Of a DNA stretch of 64,000 bases, positions 4,822 through 59,327 are shown piece after piece. The notes beneath the pieces are model-generated. The model saw nothing but the letters and a program-made list of their open reading frames with translations. It searched no databases and was not told the DNA's origin. The position numbers and the translations under genes were made by a program. Position 1 is the stretch's first letter, and each line of letters begins with the position of its first letter. Source of the DNA: Isurus oxyrinchus (Eukaryota). The stretch covers positions 868,001 through 932,000 of the forward strand of contig JANJGN010000151.1 of NCBI GenBank assembly GCA_026770705.1, written 5' to 3'.

Positions 4822-5349
4822 ATGTTTCTGATAATACTGGCGGCACTGTTGGATAGTAAGTACTGGATTAAGTTAATCAAGGCAGATTAGTAGATTAATG
4901 TACAGCGATTGCGGTAGTATTTAAAACAATTAACGATTAGAAATATCCACATGATAGACAGCTGGGTAGATAGTAAGTTCCACAAAGTCACGGAGCCACA
5001 AACACTTTAGATCAACACTGTTTTACCGCTTGATATTTCATTCCTCTGCCTCACAGACGGATTCTGCGCTGATCCAGTAACTCAGTCCCCAGGCGCAATA
5101 ACGGTGTCAGAAGGGGTTTCGGTGCAGTTAGACTGTGAATTTACAGATCGGAATATGTACAACATGCAATGGTATCGGCAGCAGACGGCACGGCCACCAA
5201 GTTGGATTATTACCAATGCCTTAGCACAGAAGAAAATTGAAATTTCAGGACGATATCTGGCGGCTGCTGACAAGTCTCAAAAGAACGGTTACCTCAATAT
5301 AAGCGAATTGAGTGTGGAGGACGGGGCAGTGTATTACTGTGCAATGAGG
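4822..5349 (+). CDS. TCR alpha/delta V segment, apparently intact (leader 4822-4855, V exon 5057-5349)
   Basis: Leader MFLIILAALLD then GTAAG. V exon reads ADPVTQSPGAITVSEG..LDC..WYRQ..EDGAVYYCAMR. 23-RSS at 5350-5388: CACAGCG-23-ACAAAAACC. Confidence 0.92.
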
Positions 5350-5769
5350 CACAGCGTTTGATCGCAGCTAGAAGCCCGTACAAAAACCTCAGCGGTTATT
5401 GCTCCCGGGTTCCAGAGAAGGGAAACAGACAGGTCTCTTTACCGCAGGTTTATTGCCCTGTTTGTCCTTGTCCAAATCCACAGAGAAGCAGTTTTGGGAA
5501 ATATGTAAACTTATCTCCATGCCACCATTTATAGTGGAAATAGTTCCGAACTTATCCTGAATGTGGGTTTTCCAACAGAGGTAATGATGGGTGGATTGAT
5601 CATCTTATTCTACTTATTTAGACAAGCACTTTATTTAATTTACATTGTATATATCATTATGTTAACTTTATTCTTGCTTTGGAAGCTGTTCCTTTTCGCT
5701 GGGAAAAAATTCAGAAATTGGTTTCTCGAGAACGCAAGAACAACGATTTTGCGTCAACATAACTCTACT

Positions 5770-13593: not shown

Positions 13594-14096
13594 AGTTTTT
13601 GCACAGGGGTGACACTGCTTTCCATCACTGTGAGTCTGAGAGCGCAGTAATACACGGCAGCGTCAGTCAGCTACAGACCAGAGATGGTTAAACTGGTGAA
13701 GTTATTCGAGGTCTGGAGCTCTGCAGAGAAACGGGTCTTAGAAAAATCTGCTTTATCTTCACCACCGCTCGAGTGTTTTCACAATATAAACTCAGGCCGT
13801 GAGTTTGGATGGTGCCGGCACCAGAAAAAATAATAGTTGCTCATTGTCTCATAGGTACAGTTTAAAGTCACCGCTTCTCCTTCTGCCTTTCCCTCTGAGG
13901 ACAGCGGCTGAATGACATAATCTCCACGACTCAGATCTGTACAACATGTTCAAACAGAAAATGGTCGGACCGAGAACTGTTTAAAATTCACGTTTACGGC
14001 ATTTTTTGACAAATAGGGGAAAATAGTAAATATGTCTGGCTCATATTTACCTGTCAGAAATGCTTCCCACACAACCCAGATGCTGAGTAGCCGCAT
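13594..14096 (-). pseudogene. TCR V(delta-like) pseudogene (leader 14096-14051, V 13936-13633)
   Basis: Leader MRLLSIWVVWEAFLT. V reads GDYVIQPLSSEGKAEGEAVTLNC..AAVYYCALR with two in-frame stops (TGA, TAG). RSS CACAGTG-23-GCAAAAACT. Confidence 0.92.
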
Positions 14097-25740: not shown

Positions 25741-26834
25741 ATGTGGCTCTCTCTTAACGCTGTGATCTGGGGGCCATTCATTGGCGGTAAGAGGATGAAA
25801 CATTTTTAGAAAGTAACATTAATTTCAGGATGAATCAACGTGAAAAGCAGAGAGTTGGTGTTATCCTTTCAACAGCACGCTGTTCGACCACATTTGCAGT
25901 TTCACCAAAAGCAAATAGAAGATCAGGAGCAATTTAGGGGGAAAATATTTACCAAGACGAGAACAGAATTGAGAGACAACATCGATGAGGAATAATTGGA
26001 GATGGTAGGGTTCTTCTCCACAGTTAAGTCAGGACTGAGGGACTAGCTGACAGAGATCCGTAAATAGATGAAAGAGGTTGATAGGGTTGAAATGGAAAAC
26101 TTTCCACATGTCACGGATTATAGAGCTACGGGGCACAAACACAAGAGTGCGAAAAAATATCCAATGGAGTTTTCAGGAGAGGGTTTGCACCCAGGGAATG
26201 GTTAGAATGTTCACTTCACCTTCACAAAGAGGATTTCGGGTGAACAGTGTCCCTGATATAATTGGACAGGTGATGGGAGAATGAAGAGGAGGATATGATA
26301 GTAGAGTTAATGAGGAGTGATGGAAGGTGATGCTGGCGATTGTAAACACCCGCAGGCACTACTTGCGCCCAATAACCTTTTCTATCGCCCAATGATATCT
26401 CCGTCTAAGTAAAACTCTCTGTGAATTATTGCCGTCAGTTCAGTTGAAGTTTTAATGGCTGATTTCCGCTTTCTTTAACCGTGCGTTCCAGATCCGATCG
26501 ATTGGGATTCTGTTTCTCAGCGGGAATCCTCACTCACACAGACAGAGGGAGAAGGTATCACTTTAACCTGCACCTATACCGGCGCTGGTTATTATTTATT
26601 CTGATACCGTCAGTACCCCGGAAAACAGCCCGAGATTGGAGTCCAGATATACACGGAAGGCAGGGCGGAATATAAGGTGAATTTCGCTCAGAGCCGGTTT
26701 TCTGATACAGCCCAGCAGTCAGACAAGTTGTACCGATTGACCATCCCGGAGCTGTGGCTGTCTGACACCGCGGTCTATTACTGTGCACAGAGTCTCACAG
26801 TGAAGGGAACGAGTGCAAACCTCGTACAATAAGT
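25741..26834 (+). pseudogene. TCR V pseudogene with a single nonsense codon at W41 (leader 25741-25786, V 26492-26795)
   Basis: Leader MWLSLNAVIWGPFIG then GTAAG; the intron is enlarged by a decayed CR1 piece. V reads DSVSQRESSLTQTEGEGITLTC..YLF*YRQYPGKQPE..DTAVYYCAQS. RSS CACAGTG-23-ACAATAAGT. Confidence 0.88.
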
Positions 26835-31647: not shown

Positions 31648-32115
31648 ATGCGGCTACTCAGCATTTGGGCTGTGTGGACAGCGATTCTGACAGGTAAACG
31701 TGAAGGGAATACACTTCATCTTTTCTCTCTTTTCTCAGGCATGTTTTCAATCAGATTTCAATAAGCTATCGGTCTTAACTTTACTGTTTTAATACATCTT
31801 TTCCAGGCGGGACTCATGGAGATTCTGTCACTCAGCCACTCTCATCAGATGTTAAGACCGAAGGCGAAGAGGTGACTTTGAAATGTAACTATGATACTAC
31901 AAGTGACAGCTATACGTTATACTGGTACCGACAACACCCAGACACACAGCCCCAGTTTGTACTGTACAAGGATGATTATGGCAGTGAGAATAAAGCAGAA
32001 TTTGCGAAAAGTCGTTTCACTGTAAAGCTCCAGATCTCCACTAAATTCACCAGTTTAACCATCTCGGGTCTGCAGCTGACTGACGCCGCCGTCTATTACT
32101 GCGCTTTCTGGGACG
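31648..32115 (+). CDS. TCR V segment (V-delta-like), intact (leader 31648-31693, V exon 31807-32115)
   Basis: MRLLSIWAVWTAILT then GTAAA. V reads GDSVTQPLSSDVKTEGEEVTLKC..WYRQ..DAAVYYCAFWD. Near-consensus RSS at 32116-32154: CACAGTG-23-ACAAAAACT. Confidence 0.95.
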
Positions 32116-32499
32116 CACAGTGATGAAAATCAGTCTCACCCCTGTACAAAAACTGCCTATGCACTGTTAGTGGGAACTCCAGTCTGTTGGGGTCTGTGTC
32201 GAATCTCGGGTAGATGAAGTGACAATGCTCAGCGGCGCTGCCAGCCGCTCAGACACATAGCGACGCGAAACCACATTAACCTCGGATCAAACTGCCGCCC
32301 AACTGTTCCCAGGAGCGGCCCAGAAAATCAAACAAACTGCAGAATCCGATCGGGCAGACAGACATGGAAGGGAATTTGACCTGACGTCCGATCCTCATTC
32401 GTTGTTCATTATCACCAGTAAATCAAGGTTAATGGAGGATGAGGGAGACATCTGCAAACAGAATGCAAACCGAACGCGATCTATGCTTGGTTCAGTAAT

Positions 32500-41834: not shown

Positions 41835-42317
41835 ATGATGGGAATCTTTCTTGTTTTCACCCTGTGTGAATGTTTACCCCGTGAGTACCGATCAAACAAA
41901 CCGACATTGTCTGGATTTAATAGTAAGCTGCCCGAGCCCATCCCAATTACAGACAATGTCTGGGGTTTAACCCCGTTCTGTGAATCTGCTCTGATGCTCC
42001 ATTAAACTCTCTCTGTTTAATTTCCAGGCTCTTTCAGTCAGTCAGTGACACAGACCCCGGCAGCGGTTACCAGGAAGGAGCGTCAGTCTCTCACCATCAC
42101 CTGTGTTTTCTATGGTGGTTTTTACGCTCGACATTTGACGGGCGGGGATTTCTTCAGAAAAACCCAGACCGGGACAGAGCGGGAGCGGATCTCCAGCGGA
42201 GGAAGATTTGTTGAGTCGTTGAATAAAGCACAAAATACATTTTCACTGGAAATTCGGGATGTGAGAGTTGAAGACACCGCCACCTATTTCTGTAAAGCTC
42301 AGTACGAGTACGAAGAA
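41835..42317 (+). CDS. NAR-TCR V (IgNAR-like V domain): open frame but non-canonical RSS (leader 41835-41880, V 42028-42317)
   Basis: SVTQTPAAVTRKERQSLTITC..FFRKTQTGTERERISSGGRFVESLNKAQNTFSLEIRDVRVEDTATYFCKA has the VNAR-type deleted CDR2 and CKA ending. RSS at 42318-42355: CATGGCG-22-ATAAAAACT. Confidence 0.88.
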
Positions 42318-42683
42318 CATGGCGACGGGTCTCGGTTTCCCGCGATATAAAAACTCTCACTGCAGATTATTACAGAATCAAATAAAAAAACGGAGTTAAT
42401 CTGCAGTTAAACCCCCCACGGTTCCGCCTCGCACCGCCTGCCCCACAGTCTAGTGTATAATGAGATTGGATTATTGCCGTTAACATCTTGAGTTTTATAA
42501 ATGTCGAGTGTGTGCGGATGGCGATGTCTTTGCCGGGATTGGTGTCAGTGAATGGGGATTGGGAATGACTAATCCCAGTTACAAACCTCTAACACCAGAT
42601 GTGATCCTGGTCTAACAGCTGGAACCGGGAACCGCAGTCCCAGCTGTTTACCTAGTATCCCCACAGCGCACCAAGTACCCAGG

Positions 42684-42756
42684 GGATTTCATGCTGACTT
42701 GTAACATTGTGTGTTTGGATGGGGAAGTCACAGTGGAAGAGACTTGAGCAAATATC
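42684..42756 (+). other. NAR-TCR D segment (core 42712-42728 TGTTTGGATGGGGAAGT) with 12/12 RSS
   Basis: GGATTTCAT-12-CATTGTG, core, CACAGTG-12-GCAAATATC. Confidence 0.85.
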
Positions 42757-43072: not shown

Positions 43073-43160
43073 GGTTGTTGTACCAGGGACACTGAGAGTG
43101 GTGTCACTGTGGTGGGTTACTAAGTATTATTCTGTGGATGGACCCAGGACAGCTAGTAAT
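43073..43160 (+). pseudogene. NAR-TCR J segment with its 3' end deleted
   Basis: GGTTGTTGT-23-CACTGTG then ..SVDGPRTA. It lacks the VTATA-GTAAGT end present in the minus-strand paralog. Confidence 0.75.
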
Positions 43161-46001: not shown

Positions 46002-46346
46002 ATTCCAGTTCCATGATTTCCCGGGATCCGCCAGTACAAACCTCTGCAGCCTGTGACACCATTACTTTAAACTATGAATATTCAGGGTTCTGTCCGTACA
46101 CAGTACACTGGTATCGTCTGTCACCCGGACAGGCTCCGGAATATCTGCTTCAGAGACACACTTCAGGAGAGGAGAATAAAGAAAACGCCATCGAGGGGAG
46201 AATTTCTGCTTCTATCGAATCCGTCGAGAAAATCAGCCGGTTAATGATCTCCAAACTACAACGGAGCAACTCCGCTGTGTCTTACTGTGCACTGAGTTGG
46301 CGTGCAGCACAGTGATACAGAGCATGGAGAGAGCTGTAGAAAAGCC
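46002..46346 (+). pseudogene. Leaderless NAR-TCR supporting TCR-delta V, C23 mutated to Y
   Basis: Splice acceptor TTCTTCAG with no leader exon found upstream. CDR1 cysteine (GFCPY), WYRL and SAVSYCALS present. RSS CACAGTG-23-AGAAAAGCC. Confidence 0.82.
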
Positions 46347-48334: not shown

Positions 48335-49270
48335 CAAAAAGGGGCGGCGGGGGGCGGGGGGCGGGGGGCGGTGAATTTCAAACTGCCGTCCAGAATGATG
48401 AGCCTGGGGAATTTATTTGCGGGGTGGGGTGGGGGGGGGGGAAGGGTGGTAATTTGTGGAGGGGAGAATTTGGGCCTGGGGGGTAAATTTGCGGGGGGTA
48501 AATTTGCACGATGTGGAATTTGCGGGGTGACAGAATCTGCAGGGGGAATTTACAAAGGTGGAAAATTGCGGGGAGAGAGAATTTGCACGGGGGGGAAACT
48601 TGCACATGGGGGAAATTTGCATGGGTTGAATTTGTGGGTGTGGAATTTGCACAGGAGGGAATTTGCCGGGCGGGAAGACATTTGTACAAGGAGAAATTTA
48701 AGGTGGGGGAAATTTTCACAGTGGAAAATTTGTGAGGGGGGAGTTTGCACAGAGGGAAAATCGCACTAGGGAATTTGCAGCGGGGAGATAATCTGGAGGG
48801 GTAAATTTGCAGTGGCAAACTTGCAAGTTGGGAAATTTGCAGGGGGAAATTTTTCAGGGGGAGTAAATTTGCATGGGGGAGAAATTTGCGGGAGGTGGAA
48901 ATTTGCACAGGGCCAATTTGCGGGGAGAGAATTTTGCATGGGGGGAAACTGTGGGGCTGCAAAGGAGAATAGAACCTACAGGGGCTGAATTTGCGGAGGG
49001 GAATTTGTGGGGAAGTAAGTTTGCACAGTTTGTAATTTGCACAGAGCGGAATGTGCGGGGGGAGGTCGAAATTGTGGATGTGGTATTTGCACATGAGGGA
49101 ATTTGCATAGGGTGGAAGTTGCAGGTTGGGGAAATTTGCACATGGAGGATTTTGCCGCGGGGGAGGGTGGATTTGTGGGGTAGAAAGAACCTGCAAAGGG
49201 GATTTTGCACTGGTGGAAAACTGCGGGGAGGGGGACTTTGCAAGGGCGAGAATTTGCAGGGGCGTAAATC
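48335..49270 (+). repeat. Degenerate G-rich minisatellite with GGGG(R)AATTTGC(A/G) units
   Basis: Dozens of imperfect units with strong G skew on the + strand. Confidence 0.9.
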
Positions 49271-50010
49271 TGTGGGAGAGAAAGAAAAAATAGAGATAGA
49301 AGAAAGAGAAAAAGAGACATAGAAGGAGAGACAGAGAAAGAAGAAAGAGAAAGAAAGAGACAGAGAGAAAGGGAGAGAGAGACAGAGAGAAAGAAAGAGA
49401 GAGACAGAGGAAAAGAGACAGAGAGAGAAGATGCTCAATTGAAAGAGAGAGATAGAAGCAGAAAGGCAGAGAAAACTATAGACTTGTCCTAAAATAGACG
49501 TGCATCTGACGAATGAGGGCTTGTGGTGTGACCAGCAAGAGGGTTAGGGTGTGACAAACAGAATAATAAATTAGGTGGGTTGTCGGATGGATAAGTTGTT
49601 GGATGAACANNNNNNNNNNNNNNNNNNNNNNNNNNNNNNNNNNNNNNNNNNNNNNNNNNNNNNNNNNNNNNNNNNNNNNNNNNNNNNNNNNNNNNNNNNN
49701 NNNNNNNNNNNNNNNNNNNNNNNNNNNNNNNNNNNNNNNNNNNNNNNNNATGGATGCATGCACAGATGGACGTATGGGCTGATGGACTTTTGGATGGGTG
49801 GGCGGGTGGACAGATGGACTGAAGGAAGGAGGGACAGGTGGATGGGCGGATGGATGGATGGACGGAGAGGAGGATGGATGGATGGATGGATGGATGAAAG
49901 GGGAGATGGATAGAAGGGCGGCCTGATGCATGAATGGATGGCTGGATGTGCGGGCGGATGCAAAGGGGTGAAAGTGAATGACGGCTGGATAGATGGATGG
50001 ACCTCATCAA
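49270..50010 (+). repeat. GA-rich tract and (TGGA)n-like microsatellite around an N gap
   Basis: Visible low-complexity sequence. Confidence 0.85.
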
Positions 50011-51443: not shown

Positions 51444-53918
51444 ATCGTTGGGTTGCCATATAACCTCAATGATGGGAGTTCAGTGTGTGAACTCTGAATC
51501 TTCGCCTCTGAAAGAACCAGTAACTTCCGATTGGAAACAGTGAAAGTAGAGCCTGTTATAGGGAAAGCGAAAGCCAAGGAAAGTAGAAAGAAAGAGAAAA
51601 AGTGAGAGACAGAGAGAGAGAAAGAGAGGAAAATATGCCGAGACACTGAAAGATACAGAGGATGGAGACAAAGATTGACGCAGAGAGCAGAAAGTGTGTG
51701 CGTGAGAGAGAGAAAGAGAGAGGGAGGGTGAGACTGCGAGAGACAACGGAGGGAGGCACAGGCAAAACCAGAGATTTAAATGGAGAAGGAGAAAGCGATT
51801 GACAAAGCGTGAGAGGGGCAGACAGAGAAAGGGACAGATATAGAAAGATATAGAAGCAGAAAGAAACAGACAGACAAAGAGAGAGAGAGTCCGCAGCTTA
51901 TTCTATAAAACCCTCAGCTTCAGTTATTGATTTCCAGCTAATTGTGCTTTAATTTTGTCCCATTGTGTGATTTCAATGTGACTAAATCCGGTTCTACTGA
52001 TCAACGGACATCGAGCTGTCGGCAACCGCACTGCAGGAACCGCTCGTTTTACTTTGATGTTTGAAATAAGGAAACTGAACAGTGAAAACGGTTAAAAGCT
52101 GCACGTTTCTCAGGCACTGGGGTTAGAAGGTTAGAAAACTGTGGTTATTGAGAGCGGCAGCCTCTAGCATTCCCCCTCACCTCCTTTTATTTATTAGTTG
52201 TTCTTATTGAACTATGAGAAAATGGGGAGATGTAGCACAGAAATAGAAGGGGTTCATACACCCGCCCATTTTATGTCATTGCTTTGTTAAACACTACTGT
52301 ATTTAATGTTTTTAATCAATTGCCTTCAATTAAATCCCATTTGTCTTCAAGCACCAATTTTCCAAGATTGCCTTTTAAACCCCTCAACTCATCCCTCATT
52401 GTCACACACTCTGCCAAAATGTCTTTGTTTACATAAATTGCTCGTTATTTCCCTGTCAGTCCAACATTCTCTCTTTCTGTGTATCTGAATCTCCCCCTCT
52501 CTGCATCTCTCTCCATCGGAAAAACCTATCTCTGCATCTGAAGACATAATATTTCGGTATAGGAACAGGAGGAGGCCATTCAGCCCCTCGAGTCTGCTCG
52601 ACATTTACTAAGAGAATCTTTGATCTGCCCAAGAACTTCAGTACCTTACCTCCATTTTCCTTAATCAGCAAAAGTGGGAGCAGCACTGGTAAAGAAACTC
52701 GCAGAAATGGAGTTCAAACGCACATGAGCACTCATGTATTCAATTTTATGTTAATTTTCTCAATCACTGGACCATCCTGCTTCACTGGAATTACCTGCCC
52801 AGCGTTCAATCAACTAGATGATTAGTTGGTTTCAAAACTTATTCTACCCCTAACCCCATCTCAAAGCATTACTACGTTATGGTCAGCAATGCCCAGATTT
52901 TCTTCTGGCTTTACTTCTCACCCTAATTTGTTTCACTCCCCGTTACCTTGCTGTTCTTCGTTTTTTTGCATTTTGCTTTATAAAGACAACAGTGCACCCT
53001 GTGGGAACTCTATTCCCTTAGTCCCTTTACATACTTCTGGTGAAGTAATACTAGGTAGTGCACGCACTATTATTAATATTCTGTTTACTACGTTCCTCAA
53101 TTTGTCTGCATATTTCTTTCTTCAACTCCGTTCAAGACGCAAATCAATTCAGAGATAGAGATATGGAAATAAAGAGCTACAGAGTGGCACAAAGACACTC
53201 AAAGAGAGCGAGAAAAATGGAAAAGGAGAGAGAGAGAGACACCGAGAGAGAGAAGGTCCAAATACTGAGGTTTAATATAACAGTTAACACTGCGCTCAGG
53301 TTGTGAATTCAGTCCCATCTTCCGGCTCTGATTTGCAATAGAGAAAGAAAAAAAGCATGCATTTATAAAGCGCCTTTCATGACATCAGAACTTCACAAAA
53401 CACTTAACAGTCAAAAAAGGCTCTAGAGTGTCTTTATGTGGGAAACATGACAGGCAATTTACACACGGAAAGCTTCCATAAACAACAAGGTGAGAATGAC
53501 CTGGTGATCTACTTCTGTGATGTTGATTTGAGGGCGGGGGTGGTGTTGGTTGGGTAGGAGGGGGGGGATGAAAATTGATATACAACCTGTCAGTCAGTCA
53601 TCGAAGCTACCATTTCCACTCATGCCTCGCAGAGATGTAAATTCCTGCGCATGTTTCAGATGGTTCCCTCATGTAACTCGACTGTTCACGCGGAGGGTGT
53701 GTTGTGTCCCATACTATGTGGTCCAGGATTTATGAAGTTACTGTTGTGGGCCTGAGACTCTGTTGTTATTGTGTTTCTTATTTTGATAACATGTTGCCTT
53801 ACCTGTTTGACACCGATATTCATGACCATTCAACCCACTGAGGAAATGGGGCCCTTGTTTCAGGATCCACCGGGCATCATGGTGAGTTATGGAGGCATTG
53901 TAATCCCCACCATGTTCA

Positions 53919-54257
53919 TGTATTTGTACAGATGTCTCCATGCTCTGTATCACCGCGCTATGCGTCGACTCAGTGCACAGTAATACACAGCGGAGTCACT
54001 CAGTTGTGGTTTGGAGATCTTTAACTGGCTACTTTTCTCGGCCGAATTGATAGAAGCAGAAATTCTCCCCCTGGCAGCGTTTTCTTTCTTCTCCTCTCCT
54101 GAAGTGTGTCGCTCAAGCAGGTATTCCTGTCCTGGAGATTGACAGTACCAGTGTACTGTGTACTGACTGAAAACTGAGTATTCACAGTTTAAAGTAACGG
54201 TGTCACCGGCAGCAGAGGCTTGGAAATGCGGACTCTGGGATACCAGAGAACTGGAAT
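53919..54257 (-). pseudogene. Leaderless NAR-TCR supporting TCR-delta V: open frame, defective RSS heptamer
   Basis: SSLVSQSPHFQASAAGDTVTLNCEYSVFSQYTVHWYCQSPGQEY..DSAVYYCALSRR, paralog of 46002. RSS CGCGGTG-23-ACAAATACA. Confidence 0.82.
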
Positions 54258-58411: not shown

Positions 58412-58503
58412 CGGCTGTGGCAGTCACCACCGTCCCGGATCCATCCACATAATCTTATTTTCAGCACAGTGACCCCGCTCTCAGTCTCTCCGGTACAACA
58501 ATC
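58412..58503 (-). other. NAR-TCR J segment (coding 58464-58412)
   Basis: GATTGTTGT-23-CACTGTG, then DYVDGSGTVVTATA plus G and GTAAGT. The DGxGT motif is IgNAR-like. There are in-frame stops at the extreme 5' end. Confidence 0.85.
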
Positions 58504-58816
58504 ATTGACACCTCAAACTGCAGGGAAATCATCATCAGACAATAGAAACTGCCCAGTTATTGAGCAGATTAAAATAAGTGTAAAATATTCAATGTTTCGA
58601 AGCTTCTGTCGGTTCAAACTGTTCTTTGTGAGGCCCTGAGCTCTGAGTAAATGGCCCCGGGAAGGAGATGTTTGCTTCATATAAACCGAGAAAATATCAA
58701 AGAAAGATAACTGAATGGTGGAAATTACAAGAAATATAACCAGATTACAGTGATAATAACATCAACCCGACAATTTCCTATCCGGGCCCAGAGAATTTAA
58801 ACAGTGATCGTACAGA

Positions 58817-59327
58817 GATATTTGCTCCGGTCTGCCCCACTCTGACTGTACCGCATGCTATACATATACAGAGCTTTACAGTAATAGGTGGTGGTGTTTC
58901 CAACTCTCAGATCCCTAATTTCCAGCGAAAATGTATTTTCTGCTTTATTCACCGACACAACAAATCTCCCCTCGCTGGAGATCCGCTCCCGGTCTGGGTT
59001 TGTCTGAAGAAATCCCTGCCCGTCAAGGGACGAGAGAAAAAGCCACCATAGAAAACGCAGGTGATGGTGAGAGACTGACACTCCTTCCTGGTCACCGCTG
59101 CCGGGGTCTGTACCACTGACTGACTGAAAGAGCCTGGAAATTAAACAGAGAGAGTTTAATGGAGAATCAGAGCGGAACCACAGAGCGGGGTCAAAACCCC
59201 GGACATTGTCTGGAATTGGGATGGACTCGGGCAGCTTTATATTAAACAAACACAGTGTCGGTTTGTTTGATCGGTACTCACGGGGTAAGCGGACACACAG
59301 GGTGAAAAGAAAGAGAATTCCAATCGT
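58817..59327 (-). pseudogene. NAR-TCR V fused directly to D (leader 59327-59282, V-D 59133-58845, D 3' 12-RSS 58844-58817)
   Basis: Paralog of the 41835 V. ATGATG is mutated to ACGATT and there is a 10-nt frameshift deletion. YYCKALYMYSMRYS is followed immediately by CAGAGTG-12-GCAAATATC. Confidence 0.88.

Follow-up and report, generated by a model that had tools for sequence, protein, structure and literature searches.

The window analysed here, which comprises 64,000 nucleotides of Isurus oxyrinchus DNA, is part of a shark TCR alpha/delta V region in which many V-set exons are accompanied by 23-type recombination signals. We found two NAR-TCR cassettes in it, paralogous to each other and placed in inverted, convergent orientation with 7.6 kb between them, and the V-alpha/delta-like exons with their 23-type signals (Table 1) confirm the TCR alpha/delta setting of both. 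In each cassette the parts follow the order leader, V, D, J and then a leaderless supporting V-delta. The minus cassette runs from 59327 down to 53951, and its parts and their order are as in the plus cassette except at the V-D junction. The positions of the recombination signals (RSS), D core and V end were re-derived and agree with the coordinates and anatomy that the original prediction had given for both cassettes. Long stop-free, low-complexity frames were also seen between the cassettes (48381-49475 and 51483-51902 (-)); they are CT-rich and rich in Leu, Ser, Pro and Phe, and are probably simple-repeat DNA and not a gene.

Table 1. Parts of the two NAR-TCR cassettes and conventional V exons in the window
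Feature	Position	Strand	Details
Leader exon remnant, minus cassette	59282..59327	-	aligns to + leader 41835-41880, 76% identical
Leader intron, minus cassette	59134..59281	-	gt..ag ends kept; 89% identical to + 41881-42027
Putative fused V-D exon, NAR-TCR V type	58845..59133	-	homologues carry Pfam PF07686
Joint region, 36 nt from Cys codon to last coding base	58845..58880	-	reads C K A L Y M Y S M R Y S
D 3' recombination signal after the joint	58817..58844	-	CAGAGTG, 12-nt spacer, GCAAATATC
J recombination signal, minus cassette	58465..58503	-	GATTGTTGT, 23-nt spacer, CACTGTG
J segment, minus cassette	58412..58464	-	intact (..DYVDGSGTVVTATA), gtaagt splice donor; matches J part of shark gene models
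Leaderless supporting V-delta, minus cassette	53958..54257	-	open frame; 73-74% identical to V-delta part of P0008 and P0013
Leader, intron and V of the split comparator	41835..42317	+	leader 41835-41880, 147-nt intron, V exon 42028-42317
V signal	42318-42355	+	CATGGCG (42318-42324), 22-nt spacer, ATAAAAACT (42347-42355)
D 5' signal	ends 42711	+	GGATTTCAT-12-CATTGTG
D core, 17 nt	42712-42728	+	between D 5' and D 3' signals
D 3' signal	42729-42756	+	CACAGTG-12-GCAAATATC
J signal, plus cassette	43073-43111	+	GGTTGTTGT-23-CACTGTG; J from 43112
J signal and J, plus cassette	43073..43155	+	J ..YSVDGPRTA, gtaata donor
Supporting V-delta and its signal, plus cassette	46002..46346	+	V-delta 46002-46307, signal CACAGTG-23-AGAAAAGCC
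Conventional V-alpha/delta-like V exons	2572-2946, 5011-5358, 26605-26829, 31779-32120	+	23-type signal after each
Conventional V-alpha/delta-like V exon	13638-13880	-	then 23-type signal

The NAR-TCR V is described by Criscitiello et al. (2006), as far as that work is recounted in PMC1845163, as a V-set domain of IgNAR-V type without the canonical Trp of WYRK, with a leader peptide of its own and an a-b loop that contains a Cys. In the same account (PMC1845163, in part) the cassette also has a J of its own, with a splice donor, and behind it a V-delta that has no leader, starts from a splice acceptor and carries a Cys in CDR1. In the window, the canonical Trp is absent from both copies, which read DFFRQ in the minus and DFFRK in the plus cassette, and the proteins nearest to their V domains are shark NAR-V plus V-delta gene models with PF07686 (Pfam). 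The minus copy keeps the a-b loop Cys (KECQSL) and has ACG at the leader start, while the plus copy keeps the ATG and has Arg in the loop (KERQSL); this is the NAR-TCR family pattern, degraded in each copy. Both have a J with a splice donor and then a leaderless V-delta, which starts after cag at 54257 (-) and 46002 (+), and the CDR1 Cys of this V-delta is kept in the plus copy (GFCPY) and gone from the minus copy (VFSQY). Branching order was not resolved in a tree built from the protein sequences of 18 NAR V domains; the nearest protein to each of the two window copies is Cetorhinus P0011 (84% and 87%).

The plus cassette, which serves as the split comparator, has a V exon with an open frame that ends at 42317, and 328 nt of spacer lie between its V signal and its D 5' signal. 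The minus exon keeps Cys23 and the YYC motif besides the a-b loop Cys. Its coding run extends from the Cys codon TGT, whose first base is 58880, to 58845 and directly adjoins the D 3' signal CAGAGTG-12-GCAAATATC, in which the heptamer occupies 58844-58838, the 12-nt spacer 58837-58826 and the nonamer 58825-58817. The nonamer is the same as that at + 42748-42756, and position 3 of the heptamer is changed from C to G. The minus J is separate from the fused V-D, 380 nt downstream with its own signal.

The two cassettes were compared by MAFFT and BLAST alignment over ~1.6 kb, in which they are about 84-90% identical. Within this alignment there is one large gap of ~400 nt between otherwise colinear sequences, corresponding within a few bases to + 42314..42715. 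Upstream of the gap the identity is 76-91% by segment (promoter flank and V 90-91%, leader intron 89%, leader 76%), and downstream of it, from the D 3' signal to beyond J, 84-85%. The minus cassette is without + 42318-42711, a piece that opens with the V heptamer and closes with the D 5' heptamer, both in full, and that contains the V signal CATGGCG-22-ATAAAAACT, the 328-nt spacer and the D 5' signal GGATTTCAT-12-CATTGTG. Counted from the Cys, the split copy has 27 + 17 = 44 coding bases and the fused copy 36, a net loss of 8 nt. In agreement, the original prediction had placed the missing piece at 42318-42711, from RSS to RSS, with about 8 nt net lost from the coding ends and a homologous downstream flank; it had also proposed aligning the plus cassette with the reverse complement of the minus one, and this alignment put the breakpoints at the RSS borders of a 12/23-compatible pair.

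The borders of the missing piece deserve attention. The gap ends can be placed at 42312-42318 on the left and 42711-42724 on the right, about 6 nt (V side) and 13 nt (D side) from the heptamer borders, and the probability that a random deletion within the V-to-J interval hits both signal borders is ~8e-5. Both excised signals are wholly gone, with no heptamer or nonamer remnant inside 58880-58845, and a split homologue exists. The excised pair fits the 12/23 rule, with a V spacer of 22 nt (23-type) and a D 5' spacer of 12 nt, and its heptamers face the coding ends, which is the deletional orientation. The minus cassette retains the D 3' signal together with all of the flank as far as J, as expected after a V-to-D joint. 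In the germline-joined IgL of the nurse shark, Lee et al. 2000 (PMC2193156) described fully excised signals, trimmed coding ends and the same joined sequence in several animals. The breakpoints of the minus cassette match this reasoning in signal excision and the 12/23 pair, and the net loss of 8 nt would be compatible with end trimming. An internal contrast to the signal-bounded ~400-nt gap is found in the same exon, where 10 nt were lost between two CGGGA direct repeats (+ 42170-42186); this deletion, near 58989 (-), is of the ordinary slippage type and shifts the minus V frame.

As regards the origin of the joint itself, the first ~25 nt of 58880-58845 are V-derived and the last 11-13 nt (58857-58845) most likely D-derived. 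The V end lies 27 nt from the Cys in the plus cassette, and the protein sequences suggest the same distance for P0004 (Chiloscyllium), P0005 (Cetorhinus) and P0016 (Scyliorhinus); in these models translation continues past V into the heptamer as ..T-H-S-D or ..T-H-L. Since the minus run has 36 nt against a 27-nt V end, at least 9 extra bases stand before the D 3' heptamer, and D-derived bases would be present. Set against the 3' part of the plus D core, the extra bases read ATG-GGGA-AGT against ATGCGGTACAGT. With its end fixed at the heptamer, this match to the D core reaches p ~0.003 versus random 17-mers, in an anchored test that was chosen after seeing the data; as a free local match, the resemblance of the tail to D falls short of significance (p 0.11-0.19). 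Our confidence in a D origin of the last 11-13 nt is modest, the sole comparator being the plus cassette, which is some 15% diverged (10-18% by K2P). The net loss of 8 nt, as counted against this one pseudogene paralogue, is compatible with coding-end nibbling, and it is speculation that the GCATGC at the presumed V/D border holds P bases. Trimming, N and P bases cannot be reconstructed because the only split comparator is a pseudogene paralogue with that divergence.

Whether the joint is inherited or somatic was addressed with four public runs (X1, X3, X4 and X7), all of them as Logan contigs, for which tissue and kind of library are not on record. Record 13 of X3 (organism A, sample S2, study P2) is a 162-nt contig that covers 58817-58978 with 2 differences and bridges the joint gaplessly, and record 22 of X4 (organism B, a different study) is a 246-nt contig that covers 58701-58946 with 4 differences and is likewise gapless across the joint. 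Both run across the V/D border (~58857) and the heptamer and extend beyond them by more than 31 nt in either direction. They differ from the window by 1-2% and may stem from other individuals, from paralogous joined copies or from related or sister species; inheritance would be implied in every case. Record 29 of X7 (organism C), of 331 nt, is ~89% alike on 58871-58991 and also matches 58691-58724. As there are at most 166 nt between its two matches, it has no room for a 400-nt spacer and represents a diverged joined-type copy, which is compatible with a family of joined copies. No contig covers the bin 58824-58864 in two of the four runs (X1 and X7), an absence that is uninformative. No insertion at the joint is listed in the contigs of the four runs, and no loose contig end falls at the joint among those listed. 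The germline test that had been proposed for this locus was thus answered in part: the joint recurs in the X3 and X4 contigs and in the assembly, and tissue, library and identity of the individuals are not on record. Additionally, in X1, a run that comprises only 3.6 billion letters, the summed contig depth over the V exon and the leader intron reaches thousands, so that either that organism has a large multi-copy family of NAR-TCR V cassettes or the run was enriched or targeted.

Protein word searches retrieved NAR-V plus V-delta models in Cetorhinus, Carcharodon, Mustelus and Scyliorhinus, and the CKALYMYSMRYS joint was absent from the models so retrieved. In P0005, P0007, P0008, P0010, P0011, P0013 and P0016 (basking shark, white shark and catshark) we found ..THSD/..THL or AVSLWW instead. 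The former is read-through of the V heptamer and the latter the end of the J signal spacer plus CACTGTG, as confirmed in the frame of the plus cassette. The possibility that these models represent germline-joined genes or a real CDR3 was rejected, as they are splice models across an unrearranged V..J. With the V heptamer or the J signal read through in this way, a RefSeq-style gene model is poor evidence that segments are joined.

We consider it likely that the minus joint is a RAG-type V-to-D coding joint fixed in the germ line. This is the explanation that the original prediction had put forward, and it is upheld by the excised signals, the 12/23 pair, the retained D 3' signal and leader intron, and the presence of the same joint in X3 and X4. 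We infer that RAG was the agent and germ cells the site of joining. The 23-type V signal and the 12-type D 5' signal would have been excised together with the ~330 nt between them, the two coding ends would have been nibbled by a net 8 nt and then ligated, and the D 3' signal, J and supporting V-delta would have been left in place, an arrangement (VD-J) that resembles the partly joined Ig clusters of sharks. In shark Ig genes, V joined to D with the D 3' signal retained and J still apart is an established configuration (PMC2193156). A retro- or cDNA copy of the Vmu-j type was also considered and rejected, as the minus cassette still has its leader intron (59281-59134) and a J that stands apart.

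An ordinary deletion without RAG seems unlikely. In its likeliest form it would proceed by slippage or microhomology repair, with the V and D 3' heptamers as direct repeats. The spacer and nonamer of the V signal, the DNA that follows them, all of the D 5' signal and the core of D would be lost, and V would abut the D 3' signal. The two heptamers lie 411 nt apart in the plus cassette and were both CACAGTG in the ancestor, and the product would be very similar to what is observed; however, such a deletion predicts ~27 nt from the Cys to the heptamer, as in the plus cassette and as inferred for the three species above, and 36 nt are observed. The tail extends the Y-x-Y-x codon pattern of the V end (YMYSMRYS), which makes an unusually long V end possible, and its D-likeness is weak in the unanchored comparison, but the end-anchored match to the D core argues in the other direction. 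Furthermore, the lone clear slippage deletion in the exon removed 10 nt only and has a 5-nt repeat at its ends.

It is much less probable that the reference captured a somatic V-to-D rearrangement of a T cell or an assembly error and that the inherited locus is split. V-to-D joins ahead of D-to-J joins do occur in TCR delta loci, the source tissue of the assembly is not on record, and neither X1 nor X7 has a contig across the joint. However, the same gapless joint is present in X3 record 13 and X4 record 22, from two organism labels and two studies, whereas somatic joints are clone-specific and one clone cannot dominate bulk DNA; in this sense, the diverged joined-type contig of X7 points to a joint that was duplicated or inherited. 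Hardly any credence is left for an ancestral fused state in which the plus cassette gained the 394-nt piece by insertion. Being the logical mirror of a deletion, this idea has nothing specific in its favour, and it is at odds with the two correctly oriented, 12/23-compatible signals that bound the extra piece, with the read-through of V heptamer or J signal in the models of several shark species, which indicates that the split V..J layout is widespread, and with the description of the NAR-TCR V domain as the product of its own V(D)J rearrangement (PMC1845163; PMC5931798). As an extension of the germline RAG joint, the VD-joined cassette might be a surviving intermediate of a stepwise germline assembly (V, VD, VDJ), multiplied from one old RAG event while relatives went on to full joining, or VD relics might be gene-conversion donors like chicken pseudo-VH; we regard this as a doubtful proposal.

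Judged by their lesions, both cassettes are pseudogenes and neither can work. The minus copy has no start codon, its ATG ATG being replaced by ACG ATT at 59327, a frameshift in V caused by the 10-nt deletion, the D 3' heptamer CAGAGTG, the V-delta heptamer CGCGGTG (53957-53951) and a CDR1 Cys changed to Ser; its supporting V-delta also has WYCQ for WYRQ. The loss of the ATG, the frameshift and the heptamer mutation that had been foreseen are thus all present. RAG cleavage requires the CAC of the heptamer, so CAG in its place in the minus D 3' signal makes this heptamer dead, and CGCGGTG after the minus supporting V-delta means that the second rearrangement of the cassette is blocked as well. 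The plus copy has the V heptamer CATGGCG (three transitions from CACAGTG), the a-b loop Cys changed to Arg, Cys23 of the supporting V-delta changed to Tyr and a short J, which lacks 15 nt at its 3' end and the VVTV strand as compared with the minus J. No lesion is common to both copies, which points to independent decay after the duplication. The joining of the minus copy, which the original prediction had placed before its decay, may have preceded or followed it. Neither expression nor function of the minus copy is indicated, and the joint has no functional consequence at the locus.

The closest known counterparts are the germline-joined Ig clusters of sharks (VD-J and VDJ in IgM; VJ in the light chain, as in nurse-shark NS4; Lee et al. 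2000, PMC2193156), with which the minus cassette shares a split homologue and excised signals and probably also trimmed ends and an inherited joint. It differs from them in being a pseudogene and a NAR-TCR cassette among V-alpha/delta segments, not an Ig cluster. In the opossum, Wang and Miller reportedly described in 2012 a partially germline-joined VH with a VD joint that is still recombined and transcribed. The likeness lies in the partial germline joint in a V gene; unlike this VH, which is said to be used, the minus cassette has the CAGAGTG heptamer, no start codon and a frameshift. The chicken pseudo-VH, in the passage of PMC2193156 that deals with them, are germline VD-fused pseudogenes that serve as gene-conversion donors. 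They too are VD-fused, non-functional V segments kept in the germ line, but the minus copy has no sign of gene conversion and keeps a leader remnant, an intron, the D 3' signal and a J of its own. Marsupial TCR-mu has an inherited pre-joined V (Vmu-j) in a T-cell receptor chain with two V domains (PMC7615758). The two cases are alike in having a pre-joined, inherited V in a two-V-domain TCR chain, TCR-mu being structurally analogous to NAR-TCR. Vmu-j is a fully joined, intronless (retro-processed) and functional exon, whereas the minus cassette is a dead gene that still has its leader intron and is joined between V and D only.

Among cartilaginous fish, germline RAG joining is characteristic of the Ig loci with their multi-cluster organisation, and T-cell receptor loci are, to our knowledge, not known for it. 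The latter have been described as translocon-organised (PMC6795676), and according to reviews both V domains of the NAR-TCR chain arise from separate somatic V(D)J rearrangements. The searched literature that mentions NAR-TCR contains no germline-joined NAR-TCR segment; the primary NAR-TCR papers were beyond the reach of this search and a prior report is possible. Germline joining of antigen-receptor genes in sharks is already known, and the T-cell receptor locus as its site is what is new here. A V-D joint fixed in the TCR alpha/delta region would mean that germ-cell RAG activity was not confined to Ig clusters, and that the mini V-D-J cluster of a NAR-TCR cassette may behave like an Ig cluster in germline joining. 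In this sense, the joint also fits the idea of an exchange of NAR V among Ig and TCR loci that are linked (PMC12227049). Although the minus copy is functionless, its value would be that of a fossil of germline joining, which may provide evidence on where RAG acted in the germ line.
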